From: Anthoceros angustus
Lineage: Eukaryota; Plantae; Anthocerotophyta
DNA length: 64,000 nt
Direction of reading: 5' to 3'
Assembly (NCBI GenBank): GCA_010909165.1
Contig: MU008158.1
Coordinates: 2,505,478-2,569,477 of the forward strand
Of the stretch, positions 17,873-38,200 are shown one piece after another. Below the pieces are notes generated by a model, which ran no database searches, was not told the DNA's origin, and was given only the letters and a program-made list of their open reading frames with translations. The stretch's first letter is position 1. The number at the start of each line of letters is the position of its first letter. A program made the position numbers and the translations under genes.

Positions 17873-19345
17873 CGAAGGTGGTGGATATTACGGTGCGCTG
17901 GGCTGGGGCTGCATTGCACTTCACCTTTTGTACTTTTTATCTACCCTCGCAACGGCACGGCACTGGGCACTGGGCACTGGGCACTGGGCGCTGTCTTTGC
18001 TGCCGCGTGGCGAAACTGGCGTAACGCAGCCCCAGCCCCCCGGCCTGGGAGGGACGGAATCTTTGGCGGCGAAACCGGCCTCTCTTTCCGTGAGCCCGTG
18101 ACAGGAGAGGAGAGACTGCCTCCCCCAGCAGCGCCATCGCCTGCTCCGTCAAGGTCTGCTAAAGTGTGCCACAGCAGCGCTATCGTCTAAATAGATCACC
18201 TGCCTTTGCTACTAGGGGGTGCCGGGGTGAGCTCGCTCCTCCAGGATTGAGACGACACGACACGACACGACACGAGACGCAACTTCGTCTGGTCTCGGAC
18301 CTGTCTGGACACAGCAGCGGGCCGCCTGGAGTCCTGGACCTGTAGCCTGTGCTGTGCACGCAGACCCTTGCACTGCAGAGGAGAGTAGCAAAGAGCAGTG
18401 GGCGAGCCGTGCACAAGAGTGAAACAGGTTTTTGTGGGAGTTTGTTTGTGATAAGAGTGGGCTCTCTCTTTCTGCCTTGTTCTGCGTTCCCTCCCGCCTG
18501 CCACTGTCCGGGGGGCTCCCCAACCCAACCCAACCCGAGCCCGCCTCTTGTCTCTTGTCCCTGTCCCGCCCTGTCTGCGGCTCTGCGCGGCTCCAGCTCC
18601 TGGCTTCTGATCGAAGGCACGGCAGGCCTCTGTACCGGCTGCTGCAGCCGCCTCGGAGCACGGCATCTCGCCGCCCGCCGGCCCCGGATCTTCACAATTG
18701 TGCCTGTGCCGCCGCATCCGCTACGGCCTGGCCTGGCCTGCTGCCTGCTGAGACAGCGTGTGCGAGCGGGTTTGGCTGCCTGGCTGCGCCAATTGCTGCC
18801 GGGAGGGGGGGCTTTGTGGGTGCCAGTGTCCCGTCCGATGTTCAGGGAGCTGAGGTTGGGCGCTCTGGTGGGCGGTAGTGGAATCGCGGCTTTGCCGCTG
18901 CCGCGGCGGAGAGTGTCGTGGTGAGAGTGGTGGGCGGTGACGCTTCCGCGGGAGACCGGGATGAGCTTGTCTTGCACCAGGCGGTTGCGGAGGAAGCCGG
19001 CGGCAGCGCTGGCAGGGGAGGTCCTTGTGCTGGTTCAGGAGGAGAAATCTGAGGGGACGGAAGCTCGGAGCTCGAGATTTGGATGCCGAAATGTGCGCTC
19101 GCCTGCCGCGTGCCTGGACTGAGCCGCAACTCGCCACTGCTGCTTCTGCTTCGTTGTCACTGGGTTCCATGCCACGGACGTAGATCGCATCCGCTTCTGG
19201 CACAGCCGGGTAGAAGAGGAAAGGGAGGCGGATGAGTGATAGGAAGGCGCGCCGGAAATTGGTGGAGTTTGTGGAGACCGCAACCTGTTTGGGGGAGAAG
19301 GTGCGGCTGACTACCAGCAGGAAGTGCCGGCGGTGGCTCACCACA

Positions 19346-20671
19346 ATGCGGTGTTTCCTCTTCACACAGTCGCCGGACAGGAGTCACAAATCCGCAGCCG
19401 CGCACTCTAGGAGCAAGACTTCTTCGTTGGGTGCTTCTTTCAGTACGGGTTCCACTACCGATGTCTCCAGCGTCAAGTCCTTCAAGTCGGGCTTCAGCTT
19501 CTACCACCGCTCCAGCCACTCCGAGCCCAGTATCGAGTTCCGGGAGCCGCGGCAATCGTCTGTCTTGTCTGAGAAGGCGGATGATCTGAGATCCTTCACC
19601 TTCTCGGAGCTGAGGACTGCCACCTCGGACTTCTTCAAGGGCAACTTGTTAGGAGAGGGCGGGTTCGGCCGGGTGTACAAGGGGTCACTTAAGCTCAGCA
19701 GGTACGATGATGAGGACAAGATGGAGGTTGCGGTGAAGCAACTCAACAGGAAGGGGCTGCAGGGGCACAAGGAGTGGCTGGCAGAGGTGAACGTGCTGGG
19801 GCTGGTGGAGCATGCACACTTAGTGAGGTTAGTGGGGTACTGTGCAGAGGATGACGACAGAGGGATGCAGAGACTGCTGGTGTACGAGTTCGTGCCCAAC
19901 AAGAGCTTGGAGGACCACCTGTTCCGGAGGTACACCACTCCCCTGTCGTGGAACACGAGAGTGAAGATTGCGCTAGGAGCCGCCCGGGGGCTGGCATACT
20001 TGCACGAGGAGCTGGATGTGCAGATCATCTTTCGGGACTTCAAGGCGTCTAATGTGCTGCTGGACAATGACTTCAATCCCAAGCTCTCGGACTTCGGGCT
20101 TGCTAGGCAAGGTCCTCTTCTGGGTGACAGTCATGTCACCACTACAGTAGTGGGGACCATAGGGTATGCGGCTCCTGAATACATCCAGACTGGACACTTG
20201 ACGTCCAAGAGTGATGTGTGGAGCTTCGGCGTTGTGCTACTGGAAATGCTGACGGGAAGGAGAGCCATGGACAAGAACAGGCCCAAGCCGGAGCAAAGAC
20301 TGATAGAGTGGATCAAGCCGTACATGGCGGACAACAAGAGGTTCTTCCAGATTATGGACCCCAGGTTAGAGGGCAACTTCTCCATGAGAGGAGCTCTAAA
20401 GCTGGCTTCACTTGCTTCGCAGTGCTTGATAAAGAATCCCAAGGCTAGGCCCAAAATGAGTGACCTCGTCGAAGGACTGGAAGTGGTAGTAGAGATGTCC
20501 GCCAGGGACTTTCCTAAACCCATAACCTTCGAGTCATCACCGGAGGGTATGAAGAAAAGGTGCTCATCACCCCCAGAGTCCTTGAAGAAAAGGTCGTCGT
20601 CACCTGGGGATGCCATCATCTTTTTCAGGGATACCATCAAAGGCAGGGAGAATGGGGTTCACATAGCTTAG
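19346..20671 (+). CDS. PCRK: Receptor-like cytoplasmic Ser/Thr kinase, RLCK-VII (PCRK1/2-PBL19/20 subgroup), single coding exon, 441 aa
   Basis: Complete kinase domain: LGEGGFGRVYKG, VAVKQL, QGHKEWLAEV, IIFRDFKASNVLLD, KLSDFGLARQGP, VVGTIGYAAPEY, KSDVWSFG. It carries the subgroup insert GYCAEDDDRGMQRLLVYE. The N-terminus MRCFLF matches the MKCF start of PCRK-type proteins, so ATG 19346 is preferred over the in-frame ATG at 19232. Confidence 0.95.
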   Translation: MRCFLFTQSPDRSHKSAAAHSRSKTSSLGASFSTGSTTDVSSVKSFKSGFSFYHRSSHSEPSIEFREPRQSSVLSEKADDLRSFTFSELRTATSDFFKGNLLGEGGFGRVYKGSLKLSRYDDEDKMEVAVKQLNRKGLQGHKEWLAEVNVLGLVEHAHLVRLVGYCAEDDDRGMQRLLVYEFVPNKSLEDHLFRRYTTPLSWNTRVKIALGAARGLAYLHEELDVQIIFRDFKASNVLLDNDFNPKLSDFGLARQGPLLGDSHVTTTVVGTIGYAAPEYIQTGHLTSKSDVWSFGVVLLEMLTGRRAMDKNRPKPEQRLIEWIKPYMADNKRFFQIMDPRLEGNFSMRGALKLASLASQCLIKNPKARPKMSDLVEGLEVVVEMSARDFPKPITFESSPEGMKKRCSSPPESLKKRSSSPGDAIIFFRDTIKGRENGVHIA

Positions 20672-25084: not shown

Positions 25085-28000
25085 TTAGAGCAGCATACTC
25101 CGGGGATCTGAAAGGTTGGCAAGAAGATTCTGCATGAACCGACCTGATCGACCACGTAGTCGGACGTTAGGAACATTGCGTACCTCACAACTCTTTCAAC
25201 AATGCATGCAATTCTCACCTGCAATGTCGGCGTCAAGAACTCGATTATCTGCTGAGATGGTCAAGGATATCCTGGTTACAGATGTAGGCTGCCCAAACCC
25301 TGCCAGAACGCAGACGCAGATTTCAACAGAAAATGACAGGCACTGACAAACAAGCTGCGGGACGGGCCATACCAGGAGAGACTTCATCCCAAATAACAGT
25401 TCGTTCACCTTTCCCCACTGCAAGTATGCAAGCCTGCACGAACATACTTGTCATCTACCCCAAACTGGTCAACTTGAGAGCTAAGATCATAAAAGAATGG
25501 AAGTAGAGATTGAGCAAACATCAAGCGGAATATCATTCAAGAACCTGAGGAGGATTGATAATTGCACAAAATTGATCAACAGGATACATTCCCAGATTCG
25601 AAATGCTGCAAGAGAAAGAGTGGACCACAATGAAGAGCTTCTAGCGCCACACTAAGAGCCCGACTCAACTTAGCGACGCAAGAGTGGGGAACATTCCTAC
25701 TAGGCAAGCATACTTCATTTTATTGCCTTCATATGAACAGAAACAAGATCTGCCAAAAACCAACCTGAAGGTGCCACCTTGAAACTCATGGGGTGCTAGC
25801 TTGCCATTCCTAGCCTTCTCTGCTAAGGCTTTCACCTGCTCAAGTTGTCAAGCGACCTGACGCCTATGGCATTGAATTTATCGGTGAATGCACGCACAAT
25901 CATCGCAGTAAAGGAAAGTACCTCAGACGAAATGAGGGACAAGGATTTCTGGTCAGCGTGTCTCACAACAGGGGTAAAAAGACCCTACACAGGCAGCAAA
26001 AATGGCACATGGGTAAATTCCAGAGAACACACAGCAACAGTGTTACAACCCGAAGACAGCACAAGGAACCAAAAAGCCCGCCTTTCTTCCGCACCTTATC
26101 CGTAGCGACAGCAATAGCAATGTCGATGGAAGTATTGACCACCGCTTCTCTAGCATTTTCATCCCAGAACGCTTCAGAAAGCACGGAATTGCTTTACTTA
26201 GAATTACATTACCACAACAGCACAATCAACTCAGATGCCAATCAACATGTACAGAACAATGAACAGAGCTCATACAAGCCTCGTACCATTTGCCTCTGGA
26301 ATAGCCTTCAGAGCAAGTGCTGCAGCCCTGATCACAAAATCATTCACTGAAAGCTTTACTCCATGTTCATCTGCATCTCAGCACCTGAGTTAGACGGATC
26401 ATAACACTTTATCCTGGTTATCCATCCAGATTGAGTGTAGCACGGCAAGATCAATGGGAGCATTATAACTTGCAGGATGGAGCAAGCTGGTGTAGTAGCC
26501 AACATGTTTCTTACCCAGAAGCTTTTTGCGGATGGCCAAAGTGGGATCAAGCACTGCATCTGGCAAACATAAAGGATCCAGGATTAGGCATTTATTCTCA
26601 AGTGCAGTTACAGCAGTCAATTTACTACACACTCAGAGTAACCTGAGAATGTATAGTCTAAAACACGGCATTCTCAGGACAAAGAACAACCGCCAAAGAA
26701 GTTGCTTCACAGAGTAACAATAAGTAAGAAGTTGCTTCTTAATAAATGCAACCACTGTCTATGAACATTGCACATCCCACATATAAGAAGTGGTCCAAGA
26801 ATTACCAGCACTTAGGTACAGATGGGGAATGCTAGTTTTTGACTCCAATAGTCTTTTTGCTATAATCTGATAAGCCATCACGCATGCTAGTGAGGGACAA
26901 CTTGTGACAATTGGCGAGGAATATCAATCCAGCAAATGGCGAGGAATATCAATCCAGCAAATAATTCATGGCAGTGCACCTTTCGGATCTGACTTGTGGC
27001 AACATTGTCAAATGCGACTTCTGCAGCAGGTGCTGGTGGCCTGGACGTAGGAGGACCATGTGCACTCCCCGCCAATTTGGGAGCTCCCACATTTACACCA
27101 CCTTTCATGGCTGCCAGAATATCACCTTTCACAAGAATTCCGCGAGGACCTGTCCCTCTAAGTTTCGACTGGCTCAACCCACTTTCAGCCAGAAGGCGTC
27201 TGACAGATGGGCCAACTCTGTCAACTGGGGAACCAACTCTCTCAACTGAGGAAGAGGTACTTGGCAAGCTTTTGCCTTTGTCTGCCTGGGGACGCTGTGG
27301 AGGTGGAGCTTGAGGGGATGCATTCACCACACTACCATCTCGGAATTGGCTAACATCCTGAGCATTCTCCACCTGTATGCAGCAAGGCACACAGCCACTG
27401 TAATGCTCCATGAAACACTAAGTTTGGATCACAGTGAGCCATACTTACAACAATACAAAGAGGCTTCCCCACTGGTACATCCTTCGAGCCTGCAGGCACC
27501 AGTATCTTGGCCAGAAACCTGGAACATCAAATACTTCATTAATAAGCAGACCGAAATCACCAAACTTGTTGTCTATAATGCAGCAACATCGAGCTTAAGG
27601 GACCTACGGCAGCACATAAAGAGATACCAGGTGAAATATAATAGAATGCTACCATCCAGACAGACAAGGGCTGTAGGAATGTACCCTTCCTCGAGGGATT
27701 CGAAGTCCAAGGTAGCCTTGTCCGTTTCTATCTCACACAGAACATCGCCAGCTCTAAGCTGTGCAGCAAACAGAAGATGGTAATCTTGATAGCAAGAAAT
27801 ATTACCCCTCGTACAGACACCATATAAAAAGCTAGGAAGCAAGTAATGGGTATTCAAGTACCTCATCTCCTTCTTTCTTCTTCCATTTGCCCACATTGCC
27901 TTGGCTCTATTGTAATCAGAAGCAAACAGCGTACAATGAGCAGCAAATAATCTGATCGGACAAAAGCTGGGATGGCCCGGGCTGATCTGAGCTGAGCACA

Positions 28001-28506
28001 CATCAGAAAGCAGAAAACACCAATTCCTATCCAGTCAATTCGGCCATACCATGGTGGGAGACAAGGCAGGCATTGAGAGAACTTGGTGAGGAGGTGGACC
28101 TGCACCAGAAACAAGAGTGGATGAGCACCGTGGTACCAAGCAGCTGCAGAAAGACAGAAACCAGACGGGGGAGCAGAACGTACTGGCGGAAGAAACATTC
28201 CGTGCAGACCACGCGAACTGGGACGAAGAAAGTGGAAGTGAGGCAGGAGGCAAGAGGGATGCAATGGACTGAGAGTGGTGTGGAGAAGCGCGTACCACAG
28301 CCCTGCGGAGGAGGTGCTGCTGGAGGTCCGAAGACCAGTCAGAGGAAGCCAACTTTGAGGAGCACCTGGACAGTAGACGGCCTGAAGTCAGCAGATCAAG
28401 TGACACCACGTCAGCTACCGGAAGAAAAGCAGCAGGGAGCAAACCTGGAAGAGCGGGCGAAAAGAGATGGCAGGCTACTGCGCACGCGGCGCAGGGCCAC
28501 AGCCAT
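25085..28506 (-). CDS. LTA3: Mitochondrial pyruvate dehydrogenase E2-family protein (LTA3/mtE2-1 clade), single lipoyl domain, catalytic motif degenerate (E3BP-like); ~18 exons
   Basis: Arg/Ser-rich presequence ([20 protein letters not shown]). Lipoyl domain [50 protein letters not shown]. Binding domain VGPSVRRLL...[14 protein letters not shown]. Core domain [88 protein letters not shown]...MLL*. Introns are GT-AG. The first three exon boundaries are less certain. Confidence 0.93.
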
Positions 28507-32263: not shown

Positions 32264-35200
32264 TGTCAGGTTTTCTAGAGCGGAGAGCATGAGAAAAGAA
32301 ACTTGGCAAAAGATATATCATTTAGCAATCAACAAAGTGTTTAAATACATAAAGACTAAGTGACTGTTCATATTAGGGCTAGATAACTTAAATATACTAA
32401 ACCCTAGTGTCGTGGTTATATGAACCTTGTAACCAGGTATCCCAACACACCCCCTTAACCACGGCACGCTAACTGCGACAAATCCAGAAAGATGACGGGC
32501 ACGCTCCACTTCGTGCTCGGGCCCACGGCTAGAATCGATGTTCCTCCTCACGGCATGTTCGAGGAACTGCTAAGATGGACGAAGTAAGCCGCAGGCAAGA
32601 GGAGCCGACGCACTACCGGAGAGACATTACGACACAAAGAAGGAATACCCGCGTAATGGAGAATCGGGTCGCTACTGCCCGACCATCACGCTACCAGAAG
32701 GGCCAACTCCAGCAGCAAAGGCGATCAAGAAGAGAGCTCAGCTGGAGGCGAGACTGGCATCAGCAGCAGGAATTCCATTACCAGAATAGCAGCAGGAGAC
32801 TGCGATTAGATGTTGGCACTGTAGCTTCATCCGCGGAACACCTGGTGTTAATCACTGCGAGCTATCATAGACCGACCTCCTGCTGAAGAAGAGGAAGCGT
32901 CCATGCTAAGGTAGTCTACAAGCCCCATCTGCTCTAGGAGAAATACGTGCTTAGGCATAGGTAGAGTCTTTTGAGCACATCAGCTGTGTTGAGATCTGTT
33001 GGAACATACTCAATGCTGACTATCCTTCTTTCCACTGAGTGCCACACGAAATGATGCTGAATTTCTATGTGCTTCGTGCGTGCGTGGAATCGAGGATTAC
33101 CCACAAGTGCAATCGTGGATTGATTGTCACAGAAAACTGTTGTGGGTTGTGGTTGAGGAAACATGAGTCCGGCTAGGAAACTGCGTTCCCACTCGGCCCT
33201 TGGCAAGACGGAGCGCTTTTATATTCCCCGCCTCGGAGGATGAGCCACGTGTTCGCTTCAAGCTCGCTTTTACCACGGCATCCGATAAGAAAAAAAGATG
33301 TGATAAACCCCACGCTGCCCCGGATCACCGCCGATGCATCGGCATACCCAACTAAAGTGAAGTCTGACCGCACAAGACCTCCGGGTCGTAGGTTGATGTT
33401 CCTCTAAGATATCTAAGAACACGTTTAGCTGCACCCCAGTGTTCCTTACCAGGCTTTTCCAAGAACTGTGACACAGAACTCACCGCATGCTGGATGTCAG
33501 GACCTGTCCAGCAAGCGATCTAATTCAAGCATCCAACGGCGTGCCTATATGGAACATCGGACATAGCCTGACGTTCATCATCATCCTTCGGACATTGCTC
33601 AGAGGTAAGCTTAAAACCTACAACCCCTGGTGTGCTAACTGGTCTTGCACTGTCCAGATTGAAACGCCGCAAAGTCTCATTAATATACTTGGTTTGATGC
33701 AGAACCAGAGTCCTGTTAGCCCGATCCCGAAGTAGCTGAACTCCCAGCACGAACATGAGGGGCCCTATGTCCTTCATGTCATACTGCTTATGCAACATCT
33801 GCTTAACCCAGTCCAGGAGCTCTCTACTGTCAGAAGCTAAGATGGCATCGTCCACGTACAAGGCTAAAATGACCATGTGGCCATCCCGTGAGTAAATGTA
33901 GACATTTGCACCGGCAGGGTTCTGAACAAAGCCAATGGACTTAAGGTAAGCATCTATTGTTTTATACCATTCGCGGGCACTCTGCTTGAGCCCGTATATA
34001 GTCTTCTTTAACCTACAAACCCATGTGGGGTGCTCAAGGTCGATGAAGCCTTCGGGCTGTTCCATAAATATGTCCTCCTCAAGCTCGCCATACAAGAATG
34101 CAGTAGAGACGTCCATCTGCTTGAGATCCCAGTCTCGTGCTGCAGCTAGGGCAAGAATCATTCTAATGGACTGTGTTTTTACTACAGGACTGAAGGTCTC
34201 AGTATAATCTACTCCAGCAACCTGTGAGAAACCACGTGCTATAAGCCTAGACTTGTACCTGGCTATCTGACTTATGCTTGAAGACCCACTTACAACTTAT
34301 TGCCTTCCGTCCAGCAGGTAAGGGGCAGAGTTCCCAAGTCTCATTTTTTATAAGTGAATTGTATTCGTCTTAGATAGAGGGGATCTAGTGATCCTTGTCC
34401 TTGCCAGCAATGGCTTCCTTATAAGACTTGGGCGCTGCAGGATGGTCTGTGGTGGAAGAATAAGCTGCAGGTGAATTGGCTATCATGCGAGAAGACCTAG
34501 GATTTCTGAAATCTATCGACTCATATGGTTTCTCATGCCATTGATCCCTAGGGTTACGGGTTCTATTGGGATATCTGCGCTCCTCAGGGGCAGGAGCAGG
34601 TGCTAGGGAGCCTGCATCATTAGAAGAAGGTAAGTCCTGGACATCATCACCATCATCTGAAGATGCAGTCAGTTCAAAAGTATCATGTGCTTCTGCAACT
34701 AAAGGAATCCCTTCACCACGCTCGGCCTGTGCTGCAGAAGATTCACCGTCATCATCAAAAGGCGTGAGAGGCAAACAGTGACTTGAACGGGTCATGTGCT
34801 CGAACTCCCGAATCAACAACAAGTGCAGGAGGAAGCATGGAGGACAAACCACCCCCTGAACCACAGGCAGCAGCAGGTGAAACACCCCCTGAAGGAGCTG
34901 GAACCAGAAACAAGTCTTGGGGAAACTCAGAAATATTAATGTCGAGGTCATCGTCGGGAAGCTCAGAAGTAGCAGGAGTGTCAGCAAAGTGAGAAGCTGT
35001 GTCGAACGAGTTCCTTAAAGGTCACACTTCTGGCAAAAATACAAGAGCGAGAAGAGGGATCATACAACTTGTAAGCCTTCGTCTCCTCTCCATACCCAAC
35101 GAAAATAAGTGGCTTGGCCCTGTCCTCTAACTTCTTACGTTGTTCTGCAGGTACATAAGCATACGCAGGGGAACCGAATACGCGTAAATGAAGCAAGCTG

Positions 35201-38200
35201 GGACGGCGCTGCCAAATGACCTCGAAAGGAGTCCGGCCCTCAACAGAACTAGTGAGGAGTCGGTTCAATATGTAAGTGGCTGTGACAACAGCCTCAGCCC
35301 AATAAGCCTTATCCAAACCAGCCCATAGAAGCATGCTGCAAGTCATCCCAAGGAGAGTTTGATTTTTCCTTTCTGCAACACCGTTTTGTTGCTGGGTATA
35401 AGGAACAATGAGCTGACGCACGATACCATGGGCGGATAGATACTCATCAAAAGCATTATTGACGACCCGTTGCGTTATCGGATCGCGAAAAGTAAGTAGC
35501 TGCATGGCATGCTTGCACCATGGTAAGCCACTCTTGAAACACAGGAAACGTATCAGATTTTCTTTTGATAGGGAAGGTCCATGAGTATCTGCTATAGTCG
35601 ACTGTTAGAGTGAGATAGTAATTGGAACCGCCCAAAGAAGATACATGTATTTTTCCTGATATGTCTGTGTGCACCAGGTCCAGAACACTGGAGGTCCTAT
35701 GTGCAACCCCAGACGGAAAAGGAACTTCTCTCTGCTTGGCGAGAACACAAGAGTCACATAAGGGAAGGTCCTGAAAACATTTTGGTAAAGGCTCCCTGTA
35801 ACATTCCAGTTTGGACATCTTGAGAAGTTTTTTCTTATTGACATGCCCCAGACGTGCGTGCCATAGCTGCGCTAATGCCGATTGGGATTTTGCAGCCATA
35901 GAAGTGGATTTAGCAGACTGACAACAGACATCCAGTCTGTACAAATCATCCAACAAGAGGCCTCGAGCAATCGGATCTCGAGCACCCTTGCGTGTGAGAA
36001 GACAGCCAGCAGCTGAAAATGTTAAATCAAACTGCTGGAGCTTCATCAACTGACTAACCGAAATAAGATGCTTAGCCATGCTGGGTACGTACAGAACGTT
36101 GTCCAGTTGAAGAGCTAGGCCATCCTTAAGCCGGAAAGTGCATGATCCTGTACCTAGGATCTTTCAGCCTATACGGGTAAGCTCGTCTCCCAACAATACT
36201 CTCTCATTGGTATGTGCTGGAGTGAAATTACTAAGCAAGGCACGATTGTAGCAGATGTGGGATGTGGCGCCCGAGTCTAAATACCAAGAGTTTGGTTCAC
36301 AGACTATAGCGTAATGGCAAACGGTCATCACGACTGGCTGCTTGCTAGAAGAAGAGGCCGGTGAAGACCTGTCCTTGGAAACTGAGTTGGCCTCAACCGC
36401 TCTCTAGGTCTTCTCGGCCTTCCTCGGTTCTCCATTCTTTTTCTTCTTGCATTCGCGCTCCCAGTGCCCTGGAATCCCACACCAATTGTAGGAACCAGAT
36501 CTTTTACCTTGCCCTGGCTTGGATGCTCCAACACCAGATGAGTACTTTGCTTTCCCAGGTGGTTTATTCTTGTTTGTGTACAAGACTATCAGATTTTGTC
36601 CGTCCAGTTGTGTGCAAGCTTCGACTTTGTTCTTCTTGAAAAAGTGCACCCACTACATCTGTGAATGAGATGTTGGGCACTTGTCCTAAAGCGACAGCTT
36701 GCTGAGCAGCACGAAGGGCTGCACCATAGCTGGAGACAAAAGGCTGATAGCTTTGTGGAAGACTGGTCAACAGTTGTGCGACAGCATCTACTTCAAGCAT
36801 AGGTGATCCAAGTGAGGTCAGTTGTGATCTCAAATGCCTAAACTTCGCCACAAAAGTTGCGACCTTCTCCCCGTCTTTCATCCGTAATGAGAAAAATTCT
36901 GTTCTCACTGTACAGAGTGTAATGATGCTCCTCACGTCATAGGTCTGCAACAGCTGGCTCCAGATGTCTTCGGCCTTAAGCAGGTAAGCTACATCCGGAA
37001 CAAGTACCTCGTCTAACCCACTTATGAGCAAGGCACGTGCAACATTATTTGCATTTCCCCACCTGTCCTTGTCATCCTGTGTGGCGTTAGGTGGAGGCTC
37101 AGGAATCTGCCCAGTAACAACGCCCCACACATGTCTAGCTTCCAAGGCAAAGACGACATGAAACACCGATAGGGTACTTAGTGCCATTAAATGCACGCTC
37201 CTTGATTGATTGTATGCAGGTGATAAACATGTACAAACACGCCAGTGGGTTGATGTTGGAAAGTGAAGCGAGAGGAGGATTCGGAGGGAGAGGTGGAGGA
37301 TTAGGTGGAGGGTTAGGTGGGGGATACTGAGGTGGAGGTGGGTAACCCCCCAGACCACCTACCCCGCCATAACCACTGCCCAATCCAGTGTACCAGTTGC
37401 TACCTCCAAAGCCTCCATAAAGACCGGTGAAAGGATTCGGGATGACTCCTCCGCCAGTTGCAGGGGCACGAGATGGCGCTCCGCCTCACCTGAGTGGAGG
37501 TTCCTGCGAGAGTTGTGGTGGATCTGCCGGGGTGGAAGCTCACGGGGGTTAGGCCTCCCTTGAGTGGTGAACCTCCAAGGCTGGTGACACTTGTGTGGTC
37601 TTGAGCTCGGTGCGATGCGCGGCGAGAGGCAGCCACTTACCTATCGATGGGGCGTCGCCTTCTCCGATTCGAGGATTGAGCTCATGGCGCGGTGGGTGTG
37701 AGGCGGGTCGATCGATGGAATAGGCGAAGGCGATGTGTTAACCATCATGTGGCCAGGCGTCGCCGGGCGGTGAAGAGTCACAGGAGCCACCAAAACGTCT
37801 GCGGGTCCGCTTGATTCTGGTGTACCGCTTCACACGCACGCTTGCAGAAAAAGTTCCATGTCCTCGGTGAAAGTGAGGAATTCAATGCGCCTCTTCACAT
37901 CTCTCATTTCTGCACTGTGATCTCCAAGTGCAATGACTGGAAAATCGCGCAGCAGATGTGAAGGCTCAGAGAAGATATGAGTGCCTGGCCGATCTACTCC
38001 GATCCAGTCTTGTATGCAGTTAAATCACAGGGTAGGCGCTCCAAAAGTGAAATCAATCTCTCGTTTCTGTTAATGAGGTTGCGCACTTGAATTTGAAGTA
38101 TTCTGATGTCGCCTGGATGCAATGTGACTTCTCCCCGAATGGCTGAGAATTTTACCTATCCCGTCGGTGCAGGTAAAATTGGGCTCACTCCTCTCCTGGT

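Follow-up and report, generated by a model that had tools for sequence, protein, structure and literature searches.

Animal and fungal pyruvate dehydrogenase complexes (PDC) need a dedicated, catalytically dead relative of their dihydrolipoamide acetyltransferase (E2) to hold the dihydrolipoamide dehydrogenase (E3); this relative is the E3-binding protein (E3BP). For plants, the Arabidopsis papers covered enter the three mitochondrial E2 genes all under the name E2, and no description of a plant E3BP, or of a loss of the motif histidine (His) in the lineage of the Arabidopsis E2 gene LTA3, was found in the literature searched; subscription papers lay outside that search, and an earlier description is possible. 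Here we analyse a stretch of 64,000 nucleotides from the hornwort Anthoceros angustus (contig MU008158.1), referred to below as the window, which carries one E2-like gene on its minus strand. A first-pass annotation, made from the sequence alone, had taken this gene for an LTA3-clade member encoding a non-catalytic structural or E3-tethering core subunit. We find that the gene is intact and under purifying selection, that its product and its hornwort-type orthologues have lost the His of the active-site motif, and that its binding domain carries features described for E3BP. Our preferred reading, to which we give an even chance, is that it encodes an E3BP-like core subunit that arose convergently within the LTA3 lineage, with catalysis lost or strongly reduced, and that probably serves as a tether for E3.

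The closest described systems are found in animals, fungi and Arabidopsis. Animal E3BP is distinguished from E2 by the absence of the motif His (PMC10156792). In the human protein, PDHX, the motif reads S-S-D-S-R-V-V-D-D, so that the His and the Gly are both replaced, as they are in the window gene, and the two proteins share an architecture in which a single lipoyl domain and a subunit-binding domain are joined to a core of E2 fold. In both binding domains an Arg precedes the Gly, and the conserved Asp is followed by a Leu and a hydrophobic residue. The helix that follows the motif, RFL...N(L/I)..P, is found in PDHX and in the plant lineage, as is AVAT(D/E)KGL. PDHX differs, however, in that the window gene lies within an LTA3 lineage that mostly keeps its His, which makes the plant loss independent of the animal one, and in that the window gene, like the plant lineage, keeps the -MLL end of the true E2, DLAT. 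The fungal protein Pdx1 (PX) is likewise E2-derived and catalytically inactive, and it combines a lipoyl domain with a binding domain specific for E3 (PMC10156792). In ascomycetes, the core-binding domain of PX is reduced and lies within the E2 core (PMC10156792), whereas the hornwort protein has retained an E2 core domain of full length, as would fit a mammal-like substitution into the core. Arabidopsis LTA3 (mtE2-1, At3g52200) and its land-plant orthologues share with the window gene their lineage, their domain order, the S-A-D-x-R context and the type of binding domain (GPxG followed by a residue other than Arg; D-x-L). As the first-pass annotation had it, the Arabidopsis sequence reads DHRIFDG and has two lipoyl domains (mosses have three), whereas the hornwort type has one and neither His nor Gly; the hornwort type also breaks 7-15 of 98 near-invariant core columns, against 0-4 in the orthologues that keep the His.

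The window gene departs from the active-site motif D-H-R-x-x-D-G at both the His and the Gly. It reads S-A-D-N-R-V-L-D-A, in which the Asp codon GAT (25249-25247) is followed by the Asn codon AAT (25246-25244) and the Ala codon GCC (25231-25229) occupies the Gly column; the exon sequence thus agrees with the annotated AAT codon and the double replacement. The gene was laid out as 18 open exons, with GT-AG at every intron and phases that agree throughout, just as the canonical splice sites first noticed would lead one to expect, and the exon lengths total 1461 nt, that is, 486 codons plus the stop codon TAA. Searched exon by exon against Pfam, the protein shows the order Biotin_lipoyl, E3_binding, 2-oxoacid_dh; for the last of these (PF00198), five consecutive exons match the profile in order, each match lying below the whole-protein cut-off, since the exons were searched singly. 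Indeed, all the evidence on the window protein comes from single exons or through its orthologue in the hornwort Nothoceros aenigmaticus, and it is this orthologue, not the window protein, that stands in the tree described below. Judged by its domains, the window protein is a structural member of the 2-oxoacid dehydrogenase E2 family, which does not by itself imply that it is an enzyme. The single lipoyl domain (ETDKA) is confirmed by the profile match and by a tblastn search of the 64 kb, and each of the moss orthologue's three lipoyl domains maps onto the same window exons. The same tblastn search found no other E2-like sequence anywhere in the 64-kb window and so rules out an additional upstream lipoyl domain or a second gene copy there. 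A search of the PDB with the motif exon alone (25299-25219) returned only chance matches, to CsgC, with E about 0.9.

The largest window exon, used as a query, led to a cluster from the transcriptome of Nothoceros aenigmaticus. The full-length member of this cluster (P0260) has 483 residues, against 486 in the window protein; it carries a single lipoyl domain, its binding domain contains TGPRGLL, its C-terminus ends LTISADMRVFDADIGGRFLQSLVANISDPRTMLL, and its motif is D-M-R-V-F-D-A. In tblastn, P0260 matches the window at 60-87 % identity per exon, with the alignment gaps exactly at the predicted introns. Because this expressed orthologue matches exon by exon, the gene model is confirmed; its least certain part is exons 2 and 3, where the presequence stretch resembles Nothoceros FWGASPTRSFSSDLFPPHEF in a comparison by eye. 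Two Trinity isoforms from Nothoceros, P0005 and P0259, end ...IINPPQV, at the position of the window's intron after exon 12, and are probably intron-retaining transcripts that give truncated proteins.

A fragment retrieved with the same query led to L001, a genomic contig of 8258 nt from Logan run SRR33208241, which has the same exon layout as the window gene. Its motif region reads LTLSADTRVVDPEIGG (D-T-R-V-V-D-P), with the Thr codon ACT. Four substitutions at near-invariant columns (K467R, S499A, M509x and N515H in Arabidopsis numbering) are common to the window, P0260 and L001, and on account of these L001 is taken for a third hornwort-type orthologue. The His column holds Asn, Met and Thr in the window, Nothoceros and L001, respectively, and the Gly column holds Ala, Ala and Pro. 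Since two orthologues carry the same kind of change, the Asn at the motif is not a chance pattern, and the variation at both columns suggests that the site is no longer held for catalysis. At one of the four shared columns, a His stands at window positions 25961-25963 (VVRHADQK) and also in P0260 and L001; at the corresponding Arabidopsis position 515 (KNADQK), Asn is found in 97 % of the lineage, and Ser or Asp in other His-less members. The L001 frame itself passes the usual C-terminal -MML and continues for 12 more codons, WDLQNLSMFLEL, before the stop (L001:7592-7684). The free C-terminus of E2 cores normally makes an inter-trimer contact. The L001 copy may therefore assemble differently, or its C-terminal end may be mis-read or spliced.

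The window gene is not a pseudogene. Between the window and L001, with codon differences counted per exon, the proportions of nonsynonymous (pN) and synonymous (pS) differences are 0.169 and 0.713 in the core exons (212 codons), 0.075 and 0.688 in the lipoyl exons, and 0.411 and 0.688 in the exon that holds the linker and the binding domain. Synonymous sites are saturated at a pS of about 0.7, which makes the ratio of about 0.085 a rough one; the robust point is that pN lies far below pS. L001 serves as the reference here, as an exact look-up of P0260 in assembled contigs gave no coding DNA from Nothoceros. Amino-acid changes have nevertheless plainly been selected against in the lipoyl and core domains. 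Together with the open exons and a Nothoceros orthologue that is transcribed and spliced as predicted, this supports the earlier view that the gene does not look like a pseudogene. Outcomes named in the first-pass annotation as speaking against its reading were not observed: the close orthologues have Met (Nothoceros) and Thr (L001) where DHR would be kept, the Nothoceros gene is transcribed, and the ratio of nonsynonymous to synonymous change is well below 1. A scan of metagenome contigs with P0260 brought up distant E2 loci only, at 26-47 % identity and apparently of bacterial origin; additional plant copies were not among them.

Where does this gene belong? The best matches of P0260, and of the moss protein P0004 from Ceratodon, are annotated at NCBI as 'dihydrolipoyllysine-residue acetyltransferase component 1 of pyruvate dehydrogenase complex, mitochondrial', and the component 1 matches include Arabidopsis LTA3 (P0203). 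Over the core exons, the window protein is 74 % identical to P0260 and to L001; the corresponding values are 71-72 % for the liverworts Marchantia and Riccia, 69 % for Ceratodon and 62 % for Arabidopsis. In a maximum-likelihood tree built from 45 core domains, the branching mirrors plant phylogeny, with mosses, then a fern group, gymnosperms and angiosperms, while the liverworts and lycophytes lie in a base that is not resolved. P0260 stands with the component 1 proteins of bryophytes and lycophytes, on a branch of 0.75 against a median of 0.097 and with no supported sister. Best matches, core identity and tree placement thus agree with the LTA3-clade assignment first made, and by these comparisons the window gene is a member of the land-plant 'E2 component 1' (LTA3/mtE2-1) lineage. 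It lacks one usual mark of component 1, namely two or more lipoyl domains: two are present in 155 proteins of the lineage, three in 5, and only one in 21, as in the window gene.

What the first-pass annotation missed is that loss of the motif His has recurred across land plants. The His is kept in 181 of the 193 lineage proteins (94 %) and lost in 12, with Asn as the replacement in ten of these, Ala in one and Met in one. Besides Nothoceros, the His-less proteins come from Riccia sorocarpa, Calypogeia fissa, Selaginella moellendorffii (both loci), Diphasiastrum complanatum, Cryptomeria japonica, Lilium davidii and Stephania cephalantha, from the entry XP_058108898 and from three Logan assemblies. 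On the tree, the His loss corresponds to 8 state changes, or to 5 when only well-supported branches are counted; both counts include the two His-less outgroup rows P0114 and P0136, so that the land-plant figure is a little lower. The 12 His-less proteins would appear to span 5-8 independent lineages. The loss is also derived within the LTA3 lineage, and hence convergent with that of animal E3BP.

The core domains of R. sorocarpa (P0146) and R. fluitans (P0145) are near-identical, yet the former reads DNRVVDT and the latter DHRVVDG, so that R. sorocarpa must have lost the His and the Gly very recently. Similarly, Stephania japonica reads DHRVFNG, unlike the His-less S. cephalantha. In ferns and some gymnosperm-like sequences the His is kept and the Gly is gone (DHRVVD followed by Thr, Ile or Val; DHRVFD followed by Ser or Tyr), and in P0142 of Physcomitrium patens (DHRVYGG) the second Asp has become Gly with the His in place. 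Decay of the motif without loss of the His is common outside angiosperms.

Other parts of the protein are preserved. All His-less proteins retain the binding domain and a hydrophobic C-terminus, all but Logan27 retain SISNLG, and all but Logan27 and Logan150 have the standard lipoyl-lysine motif; across the lineage, GGTFSISNLG is present in 179 of 190 members. As a yardstick of invariance we used 98 columns, chosen for a conservation of 97 % or more in the 181 proteins that keep the His. These keepers have a median of 0 broken columns, and the His-less proteins range from 0 to 15, with 7 in the window, 9 in L001 and 15 in Nothoceros, the four named above being common to all three. Because His and Gly have been lost repeatedly and the domains have been kept, the canonical active site of the LTA3 lineage is under weaker selection than the fold, with hornworts the furthest along.

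The binding domain can be set against published marks of E3BP. A comparison by Forsberg (PMC10156792) found that the E3BP binding domain has a conserved Arg before the loop Gly, whereas E2 has its Arg after it, and that E3BP has a hydrophobic, Leu-containing motif after the conserved Asp and a helix ending in a GxI motif; only in E2 does helix 1 end with a conserved polar 'EKG'. These discriminants were derived from animals and fungi, are correlative and, according to that paper, lie outside the canonical interface. In the window, the Arg stands before the Gly and Ile after it, with Leu two residues and Met five residues beyond the Asp, all on the E3BP side. In none of 159 lineage members does Arg follow the Gly, and 141 have Thr there; the residue before the Gly is Arg in 86, position Asp+2 is Leu in 153 and position Asp+5 is hydrophobic in 156. 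Thus, by the published discriminants, the whole LTA3 lineage appears to have a binding domain of the E3BP type. Two broader searches did not separate the classes: PDB sequence searches with the binding domain matched E2, 2-oxoglutarate dehydrogenase E2 (E2o) and E3BP domains about equally, and a feature search of the ESM Atlas left E2 and E3BP together, with the top clusters all labelled as acetyltransferase component.

Taken together, these features lead us to the following mechanism. A core subunit of the hornwort mitochondrial PDC, from the component 1 lineage, would have given up the canonical acetyltransferase active site and would retain a lipoylatable swinging-arm domain, an E3BP-type binding domain and a core-forming domain under purifying selection. 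It would co-assemble into the PDC core with a catalytically competent E2, putatively of the mono-lipoyl component 2/3 type, and supply a lipoyl arm and a tether for a peripheral enzyme, most likely E3. Transacetylation would be carried out by the other E2, and the subunit would be a functional analogue of animal E3BP. The loss or strong reduction of catalysis, the mixed core and the identity of E3 as the partner are the steps that we infer here.

Several observations weigh against this reading, and the evidence on catalysis cuts both ways. In E. coli E2o, the variants of His375 retain 0.5 % of the activity with Asn, 2.1 % with Ala, 13 % with Gly and 60 % with Trp, and the authors argue against the His playing an acid-base role (PMC5986005). 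In yeast mitochondrial pyruvate dehydrogenase E2 (E2p), replacing the motif His had a marginal effect only, as Niu et al. 1990 are cited in PMC5484351; other E2p clearly depend on it, as Hendle et al. 1995 are cited in the same paper. Given the yeast E2p and the His375Trp data, loss of the His is therefore no proof of lost catalysis. In addition, the window protein keeps the Ser of SISNLG and both motif Asp residues, its core is not strongly diverged (see the identity to the His-keeping liverwort orthologues above), and the preponderance of Asn among the His-less proteins suggests a site still under some functional constraint. As for the binding domain, the window has ESG at the position of the E2 'EKG', which is ambiguous, and its GxI end motif is unclear. 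The main alternative, which we consider less likely, is that the protein is a still-working dihydrolipoamide acetyltransferase, a hornwort E2 component 1 with a non-canonical motif in which the His is dispensable or replaceable and in which Asn, Thr or Met, together with the retained Ser and Asp, would give enough activity. The strong purifying selection on the core would suit such an enzyme, as would the Asn bias if it reflects a selected replacement over free drift. Four facts speak against a fully active one, however: the Asn/Met/Thr variation within the hornwort type, the lost Gly, the further broken near-invariant columns, and a His so widely kept in the lineage that it must normally be selected. 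Moreover, the very residue found in the window, Asn, is the variant that left the E. coli enzyme below its Ala counterpart, and the dependence of other E2p on the His argues in the same sense.

Another possibility, which we regard as improbable, is a non-catalytic core subunit whose main role lies elsewhere, in docking E1, in docking the kinase or phosphatase on the lipoyl domain, or in setting the size or stoichiometry of the core. The partner specificity of a binding domain is not safely read from sequence, the discriminants lie away from the canonical interface, the PDB matches are evenly spread, and the lipoyl domain is the most constrained part of the protein between the window and L001, all of which such a role would accommodate. 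The discriminating positions, however, fall on the E3BP side across the whole lineage, and there is no pointer to another partner. Finally, that the Asn codon is a sequencing error, or that the gene is a young pseudogene, is close to refuted. The missing stop directly after -MML in L001 is the one observation in favour, to be set against 18 open exons with canonical splice sites, two independent orthologues with the same loss plus a change of the Gly, a Nothoceros gene that is transcribed and spliced as predicted, and a pN far below pS.

The first-pass annotation had left it undecided whether the hornwort subunit was ancestral to or convergent with E3BP. For the His loss, the second alternative fits, since the loss is derived within LTA3 and so convergent with the animal one. 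A deeper common origin of LTA3 and PDHX is a separate matter, which bit scores do not decide. The P0260 core matches the human E2 and E3BP cores with E values of 1e-55 to 1e-58, its scores being 201.6 bits for human PDHX (6h60_A) and 189.3 bits for human DLAT (3b8k_A), whereas the order is the opposite for Arabidopsis (PDHX 194.8, DLAT 204.2) and for the moss protein (PDHX 222.6, DLAT 229). Bit scores and shared motifs would therefore leave room for a deeper common origin of LTA3 and PDHX without establishing it. Outside land plants, P0136 (a cluster of 13 members from ENA metagenomes) and P0114 (from the protist MMETSP1346) are single-lipoyl, His-less, E2-like proteins, reading DARVVDE and DRRVVDD, respectively, and the P0136 binding domain is nearly identical to the plant type, including TGPRGALVKGDVLAAM. 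They look like algal or protist E3BP-like proteins, and may bear on the age of the type.

The features of the window are collected in Table 1. A protein kinase open reading frame and pieces of a copia-type retrotransposon flank the E2-like gene on either side, and nothing ties them to it.

Table 1. Features of the E2-like gene and its neighbours in the 64-kb window
Feature	Position in window	Strand	Basis
Whole coding region (start ATG 28506-28504, stop TAA 25087-25085)	25085..28506	minus	splice borders, phases; P0260 alignment gaps at predicted introns
Exon 1: start codon and start of presumed mitochondrial presequence	28445..28506	minus	first 9 residues 89 % identical to Nothoceros N-terminus
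Exons 2 (28365-28296) and 3 (28217-28184): remaining presequence	28184..28365	minus	sole phase-compatible combination
Lipoyl domain, four exons (28099-28050, 27906-27862, 27758-27685, 27518-27449)	27449..28099	minus	Biotin_lipoyl profile match (E 3e-4, exon-level); orthologue alignment
Lipoyl-lysine codon AAG within ETDKA	27719-27717	minus	sequence
Large exon: Pro/Ser/Ala-rich linker, peripheral-subunit-binding domain, second linker, core start	26980..27372	minus	E3_binding (PF02817), 35.8 bits against curated cut-off of 23.7; PDB binding-domain matches
Peripheral-subunit-binding domain	about 27213-27115	minus	PF02817
Arg-Gly-Ile of TGPRGI	27136..27144	minus	sequence; discriminant from PMC10156792
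E2 core (acyltransferase-fold) domain, ten exons (26866-26806, 26559-26515, 26370-26287, 26171-26095, 25984-25922, 25835-25765, 25605-25545, 25433-25373, 25299-25219, 25143-25085)	25085..26866	minus	2-oxoacid_dh profile positions 57-171, exon after exon; identity of 73-74 % to P0260 and L001
Ser of F-S-I-S-N-L-G, column of second E2 active-site residue, retained	25599..25601	minus	sequence
Altered motif D-N-R-V-L-D-A replacing D-H-R-x-x-D-G	25229..25249	minus	sequence of exon 25299-25219
Last exon, stop, hydrophobic C-terminal -MLL retained	25085..25143	minus	aligned with human DLAT ...PITMLL and human PDHX via P0260
Protein kinase open reading frame, 479 codons, full domain	19232-20671	plus	Pkinase, E 4e-46
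Copia-type retrotransposon piece, gag	36564-37358	minus	
Copia-type retrotransposon piece, reverse transcriptase	33520-34161	minus	

The window gene, together with the recurrent loss in its orthologues, provides a concrete and clonable candidate for a plant E3BP-type subunit, and it bears on the old question of why plants keep two kinds of mitochondrial E2. It is tempting to speculate further, and we do so tentatively, that land-plant component 1 as a whole corresponds to E3BP and is possibly orthologous to it through an old eukaryotic duplication; it would be a core subunit that has an E3BP-type binding domain and can dispense with acetyl transfer. Independent losses of the His in hornworts, liverworts, lycophytes, one conifer, monocots and one eudicot would thereby be explained. 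An E3BP-type subunit would then, after all, be part of the plant mitochondrial PDC, with hornworts carrying its oldest fully non-catalytic form, and the same change from enzyme to scaffold would have evolved repeatedly. If, instead, the Asn variants prove to be active, they would provide evidence from nature that mitochondrial E2p can do without the textbook catalytic His.

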